Part shown: in pieces, positions 42,625-63,720 of the stretch
How positions within the stretch are numbered: position 1 is the stretch's first letter
How the letters are laid out: every line of letters begins with the position of its first letter
Origin: Octopus sinensis
Taxonomy: Eukaryota
NCBI RefSeq assembly: GCF_006345805.1
Contig: NC_043010.1
Location: 51,584,001-51,648,000 of the forward strand
DNA length: 64,000 nucleotides
Direction of reading: 5' to 3'
Made by a program: the position numbers and the translations under genes
Notes under the pieces: model-generated
The model's database searches: none
What the model saw: only the letters and a program-made list of their open reading frames with translations
What the model was told of the DNA's origin: nothing

Positions 42625-42660
42625 TTATCAAACTACATCCAGCAAGTACTTAAAACTGAC
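42625..42660 (+). CDS. Gene B exon 4 (36 nt): LSNYIQQVLKTD
   Basis: Acceptor ttttatatttttccag, donor TGAC|gtaagt; phase 0-0. Confidence 0.8.
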
Positions 42661-44064
42661 GTAAGTGGAATCATATTTTTCTTTGCATCTCTTTTTGATT
42701 CTCTGAGTATGATTGTTTGCAATATTGTGGCAGTAAAAAGGCGGCGAGCTAGAAGAAACGTCAGCACACCGGGCGAAATGCTTAGCGGTATTTCATCTGT
42801 CTTTACGTTCTGAGTTCAAATTCCACCGAGGTCGACTTTGCCTTTCATCCTTTCGGGATCGATTAAATAAGTACCAGTTATGCACTGGAGTTGATATAAT
42901 CGACTTAATCTGTCTGCCTGTCCTTTTTGTCTCCTCTGTGTTTAGCCCCATTGTGGGTAGTAAAGAAATAGGTATTTCGTCTGTCTTTACATTCTGAGTT
43001 CAAATTCCACTGAGGTCAACTTTGCCTTTCATCCTTTTGGGGGTCGATAAATTAAATACAAGTTGCGTACTGGGGTCGATCTAATCAACTGGCCCCCCCT
43101 TCAAAATTTCGAGCCTTGTGTCTTGAGTAGAAAAGAATATTGTTGCAGGAAAATGATAATAGAGTATCTCTGTTTCTCTCTTATCTCCATGAGACGGTAT
43201 CTAAATAGCTCTTGTCTAAATGCTTCTTGCATGCAACTGAGGTGGGGTTGCCTGAATGAGGGGAATGTTGTAAAGCCTGAATCCCCAGCCATCCCAAGAT
43301 ACAACTCTAATGACCATTCTAAATATTGCATCTATTGAGCAAATGTGTGCATGTAAAAACTCTTGTGAGTTTGTTAATTTTTGTCTTGAAGTACAACCGG
43401 AAATCCACAGTATGAGCAGCACACAAATCATTTCATTTTTAAACTAATTCAGTTAATAAAACCAGTTTACATATTTCTTTTGCATTCTATTTTTTATAAT
43501 TGTCATTTTACTTGTATCTGCTCCTTTTCTGTTTTAAAACCCATAAAAAATTATTTTTGAGTGGTTTTTAGGGTCTGGAATGAATTAATTATATTTGAGT
43601 TAATTTCAATGGGGAAAATTGATTTGTAAAATGAATAGATTGTAAAGGAGAGCTCAGAGGGCTCAGTCATGGTACAAATTAAACTCCTACTGCAAGGTAT
43701 CACTGAATATATATATTTTACAGACAAAGTAAATTTCAAACACAATAAAGCTGTAAGAACAACAGAGAAAAATTGGGTAGTTACTCTTAAAAGACAGAAA
43801 ATAATGTTGACAACAGTCAGCAATGAGAATTGAACCTGTAACGTTAAACATTATTTATGTCGTTCATCATTAAGCTAAATGGCTCCTGACAATAAGTGCC
43901 ATCAGTTTTAATGGTAAATAATAGATTTTCATATGCAAAAACATACTATAAACAAACTAAAGAAACTAATATATATGTATACACAAACACACACACATAT
44001 GCATGCACATGTGTATATAAGATACAAGGTGTAATATTAACATATTTTCAAATTGTCTTTGCAG

Positions 44065-44085
44065 AATAACAAAAGGCCGAAGAAT
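44065..44085 (+). CDS. Gene B microexon cassette 1 (21 nt): NNKRPKN
   Basis: catattttcaaattgtctttgcag|AATAACAAAAGGCCGAAGAAT|gtaagtataaacttgg. Confidence 0.7.
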
Positions 44086-45664
44086 GTAAGTATAAACTTG
44101 GAATACTTCAACTTTTCTTTTTCACATTTATTTCTAAAAAAACATCAATACAAGCAAACCAGATGAAAACGCAACGAATGTTTGGGTTGATAACGGTTGC
44201 TGTGGTGGCACGTAAAAAGCACCCACCATACTCTTGGAGTGGTTGGCGTTAGCAAGTGCATCCAGCTGTAGGAAATTTGAAAGATTGGATTGGAGCCTGG
44301 TGCAGCCTTTTGGCTTTCCAGCCCTAAGTCAAACCGTCCAACCCATGCCAGCATAGAAAGCGAATGTTAAACTATGATGATGATGATGATAAACACACAC
44401 ACACAACACATGTATATATGTATATATATATATATATATATATATATATCACACATATATATACATATATGTATAAACATACATATATATATATATATAT
44501 ATATATATATATAATATATTATATTATATATATATTATTATATATATATATACATATATATATAGAGAGAGAGAGACTGAGAGAGAGGAGGAGAGACAAA
44601 TATAAATATATATACATACACACAAACACACACACACAGATATATACACATACATACATGTCCCTTCCAGACCTAGAGTAGAGAGTTAGAGAGCTAAACA
44701 GGATTTGTGTTGTTTCAGCTTAACAAAGCTTATATTTATTCAATCCATTAACATAAGGTATGGATTTCTCAATTATTTTCCACTTAATCAGATCTGGCAT
44801 CTTTCAAATTCCATATGTAGTTAGCAAACTTAGTAGCTTTACTATTGTCCTTATGTTGGACATATGAAACTCTTAGTAGAACTTTAAGACATGTATTGTG
44901 CCCTTTAAATAAATAGTATCTCTCACCAAATGGAGTGATTGGTTTTGTTCCAGCTTAGCGAGAATTCTTGTTTTTACTTCTGTGTCTTTCTCTGTAGTTG
45001 GTCCCTATCAAGCACTTGATTAAATCTGTCTTTAATTCATCCAGCCTGAACTTTTCATTTTCTCTTTTAACTCTACCAGCATTTGTGATGTAGTCTACCT
45101 CATTGATCTTTTCTAGGTTCAAACATTTCCAATGTGCATTGAACAATGAGCTTTACACACTAAAAATCTACACAATATGTCTATTACACAATATATGTAT
45201 TGTATCTTTAAAGTTAATGTCAGAAGTTTTCTTCAGGAGTATGTAATTGCTGTAACACTCATGTTCTCCTGCTGCCAGTTTTCTTAAGATTAAATGCATT
45301 TTCATATCATCATCCCAATCTTATCACTCTTTATTGAAGATTTGTTCGTATCTTTATAGTAAGCCTCGAAGGTAACTCCTTCATCTGGTTTGTACTTGGA
45401 CTCTGTTATTGAGTTCACAGCATAAGAATTCAAGTAGAGTTCAAATTAACGAAGTAACCACATGGCTAAGCCCACGACGGGAACATTTTTTCTGCATTTC
45501 TTCATTAATTACAGTATTTGTTGCTGTAATAGTAATTGTTGTTGTTGCTTCTGATGTTATTCTTGCAGTTGTAGTTGCTGCATTTGTTATTCTTTCAGTT
45601 TTTTTTTTTACAGTTTTTGCAATTTGAGCAAACCAGTTAACATATTTTTAAATTGTCTTTGCAG

Positions 45665-45685
45665 ATATGTAAGAATTCAATACCT
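45665..45685 (+). CDS. Gene B microexon cassette 2 (21 nt): ICKNSIP
   Basis: catatttttaaattgtctttgcag|ATATGTAAGAATTCAATACCT|gtaagtataaacttg; an internal gtaaga could be a cryptic donor. Confidence 0.65.
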
Positions 45686-60750: not shown

Positions 60751-62602
60751 TGTATATATGTATGTGTGTATATATATATATATATCTATATATTATAATA
60801 TATATTATATATAATATATAATATGTATATATGATGTATATATATATATATAATATATCTATATAGGTATGTATATATATATAATGTATATTGTATACAT
60901 GTATATCTATATACATATACATTATATATATTATATATACATGTATATATAAATATATATATCTGCACACATATATAGACACACACACACACACACATAT
61001 ATATACAGGGCATCATCGACTTACGCCCATAACTGGTTCCAACTGACTGTCATAAGTTGATGAGGTTGTAAGTTAGCCTTTAGGCCTACATAGCTTTGTT
61101 TTATATTTTTACATTCTTAAGAAACATTCTGAGGTAAAAGTCATGCAAAGCATTCAGTATTATACCATTACACTGGCATTACTCAAAAATTTCGGAGTCT
61201 CAAGCAGTTGTCTTATAAACAATTATGTTTATATGTAAGTAAATCCCTAGAAGATCAGTGATCTGTGCAGAATCATTCAATCCCATGGTAATATCAAAAT
61301 TATTATGTCTATATTTTCTAGTTCACAGTTTATTGTTAAGTTCAATAAGTGTTTTCCTTGCTGCTAGGATATTATTTATCTAATTTCTGGTGAGATTAGA
61401 ATTTTCATAGCAAATATTAGAGCTTTATGAAGGAGAATAGGAGAGATAGAATGACACTAACTATGAAAGTCAAATTGCTAGAATTTAATATTCTTTTAAT
61501 CTATAAAGTTATCAAACCAGTTAATTAATTTTATAGTATTAGATCACAGGTTTATTAGATCTCTGTTTATACTAACCGATGTCATCTTATTTATAGTGAC
61601 TAGCACATACCACTCGTCATGTGGGAGGGATGTACCATAATTACTTTTATCCCTACAACACTACCACCCCAACCTGATTGCAGGATCTTCTCTTCCAAGG
61701 TATTTGGTTAATTCATTGCTGTTGGTTTCATGAAAAAAATCACCCACTACACTCCATAAAGTGTTTGGGATTACGAGGGGCAACAATCCAGAGAAAGAAT
61801 GCCAGAGCTGATAACAAAGCTTTTGAGTTGCTAGCTCTTATGAAGCTGGTCAACATGGAAGGAGGATGTTAAATGACGATAACACAATGATATATATATA
61901 TATATATATATATATAATATATATAATATATATATATATCATCATTCATCATCATCATCATTTAGCATCCGTTTTCCATGCTAGCATGGGTTGGACCTAT
62001 ATATATAATATATAAAGTTAATCCAAACAAGAAAGCACAAAAAAACACAACAAGCGAGACGTGGAACAAATATAGTATTATTGGACGCTCAGGAAAGAAG
62101 GAAAAGAGGAGGGTTTAACGTTTCGAGCAGAGCTCTTCGTTGGAAACATAGGAGAAGGAAAGATCCAGAGAAGGGAAGACAGAGGAAAAAAAATCGCCAA
62201 CGGTACACACGAGGTCACATTTTGAAATATATATATATGATATATATATATATTACAGGCAAGAAAGTAAATTTCAAACACAATAAAGCTGTAAGAACAG
62301 CAGAGTAAAAATTGGGTAATTACTCCTACACAACAGAAAAATAAGTTGACAATAGACAGCTATGGAAAGGAACCTGTTCCCTTCAGATAATAATTCAGTG
62401 CTTCACCATTAAGCAAAATGGCTCCTGACAACAATTACCATCAATTTTAATGCTAAATATTAGCTTTTCAACTGCAACAACATTTTATAAACAAACTAAG
62501 CAAATTTATATTTAAGTACACACACAACACACACGCATACACACACATATGCATGCACATGTGTTAATAAGATACTAACATATTTTCAAATTATCTTTGC
62601 AG

Positions 62603-62617
62603 ATGTGTCATACATAC
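62603..62617 (+). CDS. Gene B microexon cassette 8 (15 nt): MCHTY
   Basis: tactaacatattttcaaattatctttgcag|ATGTGTCATACATAC|gtaagtataaatttgg; textbook TACTAAC branch point. Confidence 0.65.
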
Positions 62618-63675
62618 GTAAGTATAAATTTGGAATGCTTAAATTTTTCTTTTTCACATTTGTTCATGAAATGCATAAATACAAACCAACTAGATGAAAA
62701 AGAAAAGAATGTTTGGGCTGATAATGTTAACTGCATAGTGGAGGCGCAATGGCCCAGTGGTTAGGGCAGCGGACTCGCGGTCATAGGATCACGGTTTCGA
62801 TTCCCAGACCGGGCGTTATGTGTGTTTATTGAGCGAAAACACCTAAAGCTCCACGAGGCCCCGGCAGGGGATGGTGGTGATCCCTGCTGTATTCTTTCAC
62901 CACAACTTTCTCTTGCTCTTACTTCCTGTTTCTGTTGTACCTGTATTTCAAGGGGCCGGCCTTGTCACTCTCTGTGTCACGCTGAATATCCCCGAGAACT
63001 ACGTTAAGGGTACACGTGTCTGTGGAGTGCTCAGCCACTTACACGTTAATTTCACGAGCAGGCTGTTCCGTTGATTCGGATCAATCGGAACCCTCGTCGT
63101 CGTAACCGACGGAGTGCTTCCCTAGATATCAATACCCCCACAAATAACGCAGTGTAACATGAGTTTTGTCTTTGGGTAGCGACTTTTATTCCCTATTTGC
63201 TCACTCCTAGAATGTATGAAAAATGGCTTATGTTTCCTTCAAACTTTGTGCTTGTTGTAATATTTATTCCAAGCCCCCAAAAATCCCTCTCAAACACATG
63301 GCTGTGATGCTCCCCCACTACACCTGCTCATCATCAGAGATACACATATTGTCAGCCACTAAGGGACATGCTCAAGTGGTTAAGGTCAAGATATTGAGAA
63401 GCAAATCTGGGGTACTGAGCAGAATATTTGCTACAATGCTAGTGCTACTACTACCACTACTACTACTACTACTACTACTACTACCACCACCACCACCACC
63501 ACCACCACCACCACCACCACCACCACCACCACCACACCACCACCACCACTACTACTACTACTACTACTACTACTACTACTACTACTACTACATACTTAAT
63601 TTTCACACAACCAATATGTAGATATTGTTCATTGGGTGATTGCAGCTATAAAATAAATTATATCATTTCTTACAG

Positions 63676-63720
63676 ATCAAGGCAATTAAAACAGCAATGC
63701 TAAAATTTTATAAATGCAAG
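63676..63720 (+). CDS. Gene B next exon (45 nt): IKAIKTAMLKFYKCK, probable start of helix C; gene continues past the window
   Basis: Acceptor tcatttcttacag, donor CAAG|gtaagt; phase 0-0, open; AIKTAM loosely resembles ferritin GLNAM. Confidence 0.7.

Follow-up and report, generated by a model that had tools for sequence, protein, structure and literature searches.

How does a gene come to hold a run of exons only seven codons long, and what would such a run do for the protein? The question is raised by an octopod gene, LOC115219182, in a 64,000-nucleotide (nt) stretch of the Octopus sinensis genome (NCBI RefSeq assembly GCF_006345805.1, contig NC_043010.1, positions 51,584,001 to 51,648,000, forward strand), the whole of which we call the window. 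An earlier note on this DNA, made from the letters alone, had recognised an array of minute cassettes there and had assigned it to the BC loop of a secreted, ferritin-like subunit with variable loops. Comparison with the O. vulgaris and Argonauta loci leads us to a related reading which, taken as a whole, we regard as likely: LOC115219182 would be a ferritin-descended octopod gene whose hypervariable BC-loop microexons are mostly included, and its product would be a secreted, non-oxidising binding protein.

The gene and its relatives

An exhaustive HMMER search of 1.84 billion proteins, with a provisional join of the window exons as the query, matched XP_036364934.1 (uncharacterized protein LOC115219182 of O. 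sinensis, 216 amino acids, aa), its cluster mates CAI9733177.1 (O. vulgaris, 259 aa) and a 97-aa O. bimaculoides fragment, and a 316-aa homologue from Argonauta hians. Joined without cassette 5, the window exons (Table 1) give exactly residues 1–127 of XP_036364934.1, and the region is the middle of LOC115219182. As had been read before, the array follows the exon that ends ...FDFQEVA: this 141-nt exon is succeeded by the 36-nt exon LSNYIQQVLKTD and then by the microexon that opens NNKRPK, all on the plus strand. The array is closed by the 45-nt exon IKAIKTAMLKFYKCK, and the exon for helix C, 102 nt long, is the next one downstream, about 2.1 kilobases (kb) past the end of the window.

The loci of O. 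vulgaris and of Argonauta were retrieved, and the proteins placed on both. The 259-aa O. vulgaris protein combines a signal peptide and helix A with the same seven cassettes as in O. sinensis, and its coding exons measure 73 (signal peptide), 74, 141, 36, six times 21, once 15, 45, 102 and 165 nt plus the stop codon. In Argonauta the first three and the last three coding exons are as in O. vulgaris (the counterpart of the 45-nt exon, VKDLENKISDLIKNG, is likewise 45 nt), and the middle consists of eight microexons of 30, 30, 24, 21, 30, 27, 21 and 27 nt, every one divisible by three and bordered by canonical splice sites. Since Argonauta shares the plan of the array, a series of symmetric microexons has occupied this place for a long time in octopod evolution; uniformity at 21 nt is restricted to the Octopus lineage. 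A protein homologue search with an exon pair returned no match, one with a ferritin fragment returned short fragments only, and none of the papers searched names the gene or its accessions or links microexons to LOC115219182.

Relationship to ferritin

Is this protein a ferritin by origin? We think it very likely that the gene descends from a ferritin gene and that domain searches miss the link, because two segments matched in the PDB, scores from a hidden Markov model (HMM) and BLASTP, the gene plan and a ferritin neighbour in Argonauta all agree. When the PDB was searched with either the true protein or the family profile, ferritins ranked first, matching in two collinear segments: residues 52–95 against ferritin 29–72 (helix B), and residues 197–246 against ferritin 117–168 (the end of helix C, helix D and helix E). 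Ferritins make up 11 of the 15 profile matches listed. Expectation values (E) range overall from 0.02 to 1, with 0.3–0.8 for helices C–E and 0.017 for helix B; the last value owes something to a false exon junction, and the helix-B part of the match persists with the true protein. A ferritin HMM was built from six sequences, human FTH1 and five Biomphalaria ferritins (PMC10799875, supplement; machine-read from the PDF, with small errors possible). It gives the Octopus protein 10.6 bits, a score that none of 3,000 shuffles reaches, and BLASTP to the same FTH1 sequence gives 29.6 bits for residues 70–244 against 22–173. Over helices B, C, D and E the similarity is weak, consistent and collinear.

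The exons of FTH1 measure 147, 126 and 165 nt. In the spider soma ferritin gene, exon 1 ends ...YVYLSM and exon 2 runs for 147 nt in phase 0/0 from GYYFDRDD to LQNIE; the octopod counterpart of this exon runs for 141 nt, also in phase 0/0, from GNSFNQHS to FDFQEVA. In many ferritin fragments, taken from unrelated animals, the reading frame continues through the donor after LQDIK, and in one through that after NDPQ. The octopod borders LLRLL/GNSF, FQEVA/ and NKDDKH/ITY are all in phase 0 and stand at these ferritin intron positions (YLSM, LQDIK and NDPH/Q, respectively). An Elysia ferritin locus is intronless and hence offers no positions to compare. The upstream neighbour of the Argonauta homologue is a gene for a 208-aa protein with the ferritin domain PF00210 (locus L002, 1–3778, minus strand); in the window, the 30 kb that precede LOC115219182 hold no ferritin gene, and human FTH1, run by tblastn on the window and the loci, gave no match.

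Iron oxidation in ferritin depends on the ferroxidase centre, which in the human H chain comprises E27, Y34, E61/E62, H65, E107 and Q141. The octopod protein keeps no helix-B or helix-D ligand, with SSQSYDLG in the place of SHEEREHA and NHLHHQ in the place of NEQVKA; judged by these residues, its function is not iron oxidation. Two histidines of the NHLHHQ motif (H216 and H219 in O. vulgaris numbering) do not vary between Octopus and Argonauta; they occupy the helix-D positions of ferritin E140–A144, beside the former ferroxidase site, where they could form a different metal site.

Position of the array in the BC loop

In joint alignments the span from FDFQEVA to RALEFL falls opposite ferritin KPxxDEWG and opposite the insertion of snail yolk ferritin. 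The 102-nt exon EPIKPYRALEFLQLSNVKMIHRIITHIINKDDKH lines up with helix C of ferritin, its end coincides with the position of ferritin intron 3, and helix C begins near P175–Y176 of the 259-aa protein. The extra loop thus extends from L97 to about P175 and comprises the residues of the 36-nt exon, of the seven microexons and of the 45-nt exon, together with EPIKP; its 79 residues stand against some 10 in ferritin, a net insertion of about 70 aa. These alignments, together with the downstream exon, support a location of the array in the BC loop, between the helix-B/loop exon and helix C, as the earlier note had proposed. Its extent needs revision. The 45-nt exon, formerly taken as the probable start of helix C, belongs to the insertion, with helix C in the next exon, and the 47 aa formerly given for the insertion are those of the microexons, out of about 70. 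Both LSNYIQQVLKTD and IKAIKTAMLKFYKCK resemble ferritin A-M-E-x-A-L-x-L-E-K and were considered as the start of helix C, a role that the 102-nt exon rules out; with LSNYIQQVLKTD as that start, the array would sit inside a helix.

In ferritin cages the outer surface is formed by the N-terminus, the BC loop, helix A and helix C, in agreement with the outer-shell position stated before, and the BC loop of human H ferritin carries receptor binding (PMC7557750). Both snail yolk ferritins possess a signal peptide, have no iron-responsive element (IRE) and carry a 42-aa insertion, which matches the roughly 40 residues cited in the earlier note (PMC10799875); in the Biomphalaria protein the insertion has two Cys and lies between ...RGGRVRFPPVVLK and W-RAGLYALEDTLALEK, in the BC loop and at the intron-2 position (PMC10799875, supplement). 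Low-confidence structure models of the octopod protein give a helix at 93–106, coil across the cassettes and a helix at 147–169, for which a helical stalk bearing a disordered loop is a reasonable but tentative picture.

Structure and divergence of the microexons

The seven real microexons (six of 21 nt and one of 15 nt, all in phase 0) contribute 47 aa with four Cys, and our recount agrees with the numbers given before once cassette 5 is left aside. Together they account for 141 of the 780 nt of coding sequence, stop codon included (about 18%), and are separated by introns of 1.1–5.7 kb. Frame 0 is the sole open frame across all eight cassettes. The donors are either GTAAGTAT or GTGAGTAT and match U1 over eight positions, and the acceptors are strong. 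The acceptor motif AAATTGTCTTTGCAG occurs 14 times in the whole window with at most 3 mismatches, against 3.9 expected and with no shuffle reaching 14, and eight sites 3' of 42660 have this context, each of them opening an exon. Such a series of symmetric microexons, in a gene whose product is secreted, is the architecture of micro-exon genes (MEGs). Six Cys are present in the mature Octopus protein: each of four cassettes supplies one, the 45-nt exon another, and the sixth is close to the C-terminus; the Argonauta protein has two, both inside the insertion.

How do the copies differ? Upstream, from −220 to −101, identity between copies is 72–74% (in the group c1/c3/c6/c7/c8), and from −36 to −1, a segment with the branch point (TTAAC or CTAAC), the pyrimidine tract and TTTGCAG, it reaches 86–90%. 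Over the 21 coding bases it drops to 36–41%, where random sequence would give 28%, and it returns to 75–82% from +1 to +60 and to about 70% from +61 to +130. The contrast between exon and flanks is pronounced (Fisher p = 1e-57, seven units). Taken together, splice flanks agree between copies at 84–90% and the coding 21 nt at about 40%. By their flanks, all seven microexons arose from one unit by tandem duplication. Divergence of the coding 21 nt exceeds even that of distal intron, yet length is kept in six of seven units and an open frame in all seven, with no indels or stops; because of this combination, the pattern points to diversification by substitution under selection.

Between O. sinensis and O. 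vulgaris, the microexons differ by 3 substitutions in 141 nt (2 replacement, 1 silent), the signal peptide and the 141-, 36- and 45-nt exons by none in 295 nt, and the immediate flanks by about 0.6% if a poorly aligned 150 nt upstream of cassette 8 are set aside. The direction of these substitutions fits diversification, in counts too small for a test. Paralogous flanks are about 85% identical, much below the roughly 99% of orthologous flanks, and thus give no sign of ongoing homogenisation.

Assembly gap and cassette 5

The assembly contains an intronic gap, which no reading frame crosses. The 1738 nt that end at its left edge (48947–50684) and the 1740 nt that begin at its right edge (50785–52524) are 96.9% identical over 1760 nt, differing by 13 mismatches and, for the remainder, by microsatellite indels. 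A single base (K to N) separates cassettes 4 and 5, which have equivalent positions within their copies. In O. vulgaris the stretch occurs once, and cassette 4 lies closer to its successor than in O. sinensis by about 1.98 kb, which corresponds to one copy plus the gap; the peptide KCMNPPI is found neither in the annotated proteins of O. sinensis and O. vulgaris nor at the O. vulgaris locus. With flanks so similar and a single copy in O. vulgaris, the two sides of the gap are overlapping copies and not a continuation, most likely two haplotypes or an unmerged contig overlap. Cassette 5, already set apart as a duplicate, is very probably an artefact of assembly or a haplotype duplicate, and the true number of microexons is seven.

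Alternative readings

Several results weigh against the reading favoured here, and they concern the integrity of the O. sinensis copy, the splicing of the array and the ferritin relationship. For the first two, as for the duplication above, our judgements cover assemblies and annotations.

Could the O. sinensis copy be a pseudogene? Exon 2 reads DGKVAHKLKLLFQTYYQNFELLRLL in O. vulgaris, and in the O. sinensis assembly it reads DGKVANKLKLLFQAYYQKF, a stop and TPAAA (...YYQKF, stop, TPAAA), so that the copy as assembled carries an in-frame stop. Two differences from O. vulgaris are responsible, A5 for A4 and, 22 nt on, T for TT; exon length is unchanged, and the segment between them is out of frame and contains a TGA. 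Because of this stop, exon 2 is left out of the RefSeq model, which begins instead at an ATG inside exon 1 (30514, MDPWQV) in another frame, and XP_036364934.1 is thus N-terminally truncated, lacking the signal peptide and helix A. If the stop were real, the gene would yield such a truncated product, without a signal peptide, or none. Two compensating one-base homopolymer differences 22 nt apart are nevertheless typical of long-read assembly errors, the same assembly holds a false duplication 15 kb away, and the remaining coding exons of the window are identical, or nearly so, to those of O. vulgaris. We favour an assembly error, given the closeness of the two homopolymer-length differences and the false duplication, and consider a pseudogene unlikely. 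An exon for the signal peptide is present, which supports the secretion suggested in the earlier note, and an Rfam search of 29800–30600 (660 nt before the ATG, E up to 10) found no IRE, an upstream untranslated-region exon being possible.

The second alternative was the earlier note's own: with varying subsets of cassettes, a single gene would give rise to numerous secreted subunits that differ in their surface loops, as a diversified recognition scaffold. Every microexon is divisible by three and in phase 0, which keeps any subset in frame; coding parts are hypervariable between copies while splice flanks are conserved; the hexamer TGCATG occurs 65 nt upstream of six of the eight cassettes; and schistosome MEGs provide a precedent. 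An annotated O. vulgaris isoform, P0006 (234 aa), moreover omits the entire array: its 36-nt exon is prolonged by 66 nt beyond the usual donor, as far as a weak donor GTGGCA (window 42727), and is joined to the 45-nt exon. The full models of O. sinensis and O. vulgaris nevertheless each carry all seven microexons, and annotation (one RefSeq isoform, two in O. vulgaris) contains models with full inclusion and the one that skips the whole array, none with a partial subset. Splice sites are near-perfect to consensus. The four cassette Cys come at one per cassette, most subsets would leave an odd number, and the even number in the protein fits disulfides in a secreted protein and so argues against free loss of single cassettes. 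Between the conserved flanks and the bordering introns, the longest docking/selector complementarity is 10 nt or less, and the annotated proteins hold all seven microexons in series, unlike the mutually exclusive exons of Dscam. In P0006 the added residues are translated from intron and form a hydrophobic stretch, and an aberrant transcript may lie behind them. On these annotation models, from which the constitutive inclusion is read, we favour inclusion that is constitutive or all-or-none, and find variable subsets an improbable source of loop diversity.

Two observations belong beside this question. The 66 nt after the 36-nt exon (42661–42726) are open in frame (VSGIIFFFASLFDSLSMIVCNI) and identical in O. 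sinensis and O. vulgaris. The TGCATG hexamer, the Rbfox-type motif, stands at −65 or −66 in six of the eight units (those of the cassettes at 44065, 48532, 50123, 51950, 55826 and 58694) and at −53 in the last; it belongs to the duplicated unit and adjoins a CA/TG microsatellite, and may be meaningless.

Finally, the protein might be an unrelated helical secreted protein that resembles ferritin by chance. The Pfam search suggested in the earlier note, run on the exon translations and the family proteins with E up to 1–10, matches no Ferritin domain (PF00210) in any version. With hhalign, comparisons to human FTH1, to 41 ferritin fragments or to six full ferritins give probabilities of 2–3%, the best alignment being the expected one in each, and the Argonauta protein, taken by itself, scores without significance against the ferritin HMM. 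The structure prediction that had also been suggested yields no confident ferritin fold: AlphaFold2, with the four or five available sequences as input, reaches a predicted local distance difference test (pLDDT) score of 37.1 with the cassettes and 37.9 without, and its models, in themselves untrustworthy, place low-confidence helices at 25–52, 61–85, 175–200, 203–232 and 236–248, where they are expected. Profile and structure methods fail because the family is known from three to four species in the databases. What the ferritin-like assignment lacks in a Pfam match and a confident fold, it gains in the intron plan, the two collinear matches and the Argonauta neighbour. With three intron positions and their phases shared with ferritin genes, two separate segments matching the proper parts in the proper order, an HMM score beyond all 3,000 shuffles and a ferritin gene beside the Argonauta homologue, chance resemblance is very unlikely.

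Other features of the window

The window, whose letters match O. sinensis chromosome record CM016872.1 exactly, is AT-rich and contains many microsatellites and repeats like short interspersed nuclear elements (SINEs), besides a full-length 5S ribosomal RNA gene (Table 1). An exon for helix A had been sought further downstream, with an acceptor at 37986, 38022 or 38052 and an end at 38123 (...IWPIHIYLS); it was ferritin-like by eye and in a PDB alignment, and was rejected since the true exon 2 lies elsewhere and 37655–38031 is a dispersed repeat. The intron between microexons 7 and 8 holds an open frame, AITEEFKTGCPWELLYANDL...CSICRKG..., with a Cys-rich finger, presumably a transposon fragment from the C-terminal part of a retroelement protein.

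Table 1. Positions of the exons of LOC115219182 and of other features, in window coordinates except where another locus is given
Feature	Position	Strand	Length	Remarks
5S ribosomal RNA gene	3786–3898	−		full length; 50.8 bits against a gathering score of 38
Exon 1, coding part (signal peptide)	30459–30531	+		ends in phase 1; donor GTAAGA; matches residues 1–24 of O. vulgaris P0004, resembles the Argonauta signal peptide
Exon 2 (helix-A region)	35851–35924	+	74 nt	phase 1 to 0; from comparison with O. vulgaris
Dispersed repeat	37655–38031 and 13018–13391	opposite		88% identical over 381 nt
Exon with end of helix A, helix B and first half of BC loop	38572–38712	+	141 nt	phase 0/0; GNSFNQHSW...NKHGFVFDFQEVA; ends ...FDFQEVA
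Exon opening the BC-loop insertion	42625–42660	+	36 nt	LSNYIQQVLKTD; AG/GT borders, phase 0
Microexon 1	44065–44085	+	21 nt	NNKRPKN; AG/GT, phase 0
Microexon 2	45665–45685	+	21 nt	ICKNSIP; AG/GT, phase 0
Microexon 3	48532–48552	+	21 nt	KPDPTAD; AG/GT, phase 0
Microexon 4	50123–50143	+	21 nt	KCMKPPI; AG/GT, phase 0
Assembly gap	50685–50784	.	100 N	intronic
Cassette 5	51950–51970	+	21 nt	KCMNPPI; AG/GT, phase 0; copy of microexon 4 in the duplicated block right of the gap
Microexon 6 (fifth real)	55826–55846	+	21 nt	ICTKTMD; AG/GT, phase 0
Microexon 7 (sixth real)	58694–58714	+	21 nt	LRGAEKH; AG/GT, phase 0
Open frame, presumed transposon fragment	59190–59700	+
Microexon 8 (seventh real)	62603–62617	+	15 nt	MCHTY; AG/GT, phase 0
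Exon closing the insertion	63676–63720	+	45 nt	IKAIKTAMLKFYKCK; AG/GT borders, phase 0; not helix C
Exon with NHLHHQ	L003 47956–48120		165 nt	outside the window; window coordinate = L003 + 20513

Discussion

What kind of protein would this gene produce? In the reading we favour, the gene has retained the exon plan of ferritin with its three phase-0 introns and carries an exon for a signal peptide, its ferroxidase residues having been replaced. Where ferritin exon 3 codes for the second half of the BC loop, the octopod gene has instead a run of small symmetric exons, which strong donors (GTAAGTAT or GTGAGTAT) and conserved flanks probably cause to be included constitutively or predominantly. 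The resulting loop would be basic, rich in Pro and Cys and probably disordered, set between two short extra helices, and it would lie on the outside if the protein still forms a ferritin-type bundle or cage. The confinement of fast change to the coding 21 nt suggests diversifying selection on an exposed binding surface. Most likely the product acts, once secreted, as a carrier or a binding protein that meets a partner through this loop, for instance a receptor, a matrix or a foreign surface.

A bolder picture, which we rate as highly improbable, is a secreted ferritin-type cage in which tissue-specific, individual-specific or combinatorial subsets of microexons display, on each particle, up to 24 copies of one diversified loop stapled by disulfides. 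If true, it would be a multivalent recognition or immune-type scaffold of cephalopods, built by the device of the schistosome MEGs, and the locus would be of high interest if the loop is both displayed on a cage and diversified by splicing.

Under the reading we favour, an uncharacterized octopod gene is tied to the ferritin family where domain searches miss the link, and molluscs would have a second, independent example of a secreted relative of ferritin whose BC loop has received a large insertion at the same point. The apparent origin of the loop is unusual, by tandem duplication of a 21-nt exon in which the splice signals were kept and seven codons rewritten. It would offer a clean natural case of exon-level diversification in a folded protein and a micro-exon-gene-like architecture outside flatworms. 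Two faults in the O. sinensis reference are flagged as well, the false duplication at the gap and the frame-breaking exon 2 that truncates the RefSeq protein.

Comparison with known systems

Dscam and the 5' mini-exons of troponin T are tandem duplicated exon clusters with mutually exclusive or combinatorial splicing. Like the octopod array, these clusters consist of tandem exons of equal length and phase with conserved splice flanks; unlike them, the octopod gene has all copies in series, no pairing of selector and docking sequences, and coding parts that are not recognisably homologous.

Among ferritins, the insect and other invertebrate secreted proteins and the canonical H and L chains share the phase-0 introns (YLSM, LQDIK, NDPH/Q) and the helix order A to E with the octopod protein, and the secreted invertebrate ferritins share its signal peptide as well. 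The canonical BC loop, however, has 18 residues, and H-type chains possess a ferroxidase centre, whereas the octopod loop region has about 90 residues and the centre is absent.

The schistosome MEGs resemble the octopod gene in their secreted products, very short symmetric exons, kilobase introns and fast evolution (PMC10526429), without any sequence relationship between them. MEG proteins are small, disordered and encoded almost wholly by microexons, whereas the octopod microexons are confined to a single loop within a helical domain. For MEGs there is documented protein variation through exon skipping; for the octopod gene, models with full inclusion and with skipping of the whole array are annotated.

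The snail yolk ferritins of Lymnaea stagnalis and Biomphalaria glabrata have, like the octopod protein, a signal peptide, no IRE found and degenerate ferroxidase residues, together with a large Cys-containing BC-loop insertion that follows the ...RGGRxxxxxxxK strand at ferritin intron 2 (PMC10799875). They are still recognisable as ferritins, whereas the octopod protein escapes Pfam, and the two insertions are unrelated in sequence and differ in size (42 aa against about 70 aa). Orthology with yolk ferritin is unsupported, the Biomphalaria yolk ferritin being the weakest match of six ferritins in phmmer and BLASTP. Since the octopod protein is no closer to yolk ferritin than to soma ferritins, the shared site of insertion may reflect parallel evolution at an intron that readily takes new exons. 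The octopod gene thus has its nearest relative in kind in a secreted, ferroxidase-dead ferritin with a BC-loop insertion, as represented by snail yolk ferritin, and its nearest counterpart in encoding in the schistosome MEGs.

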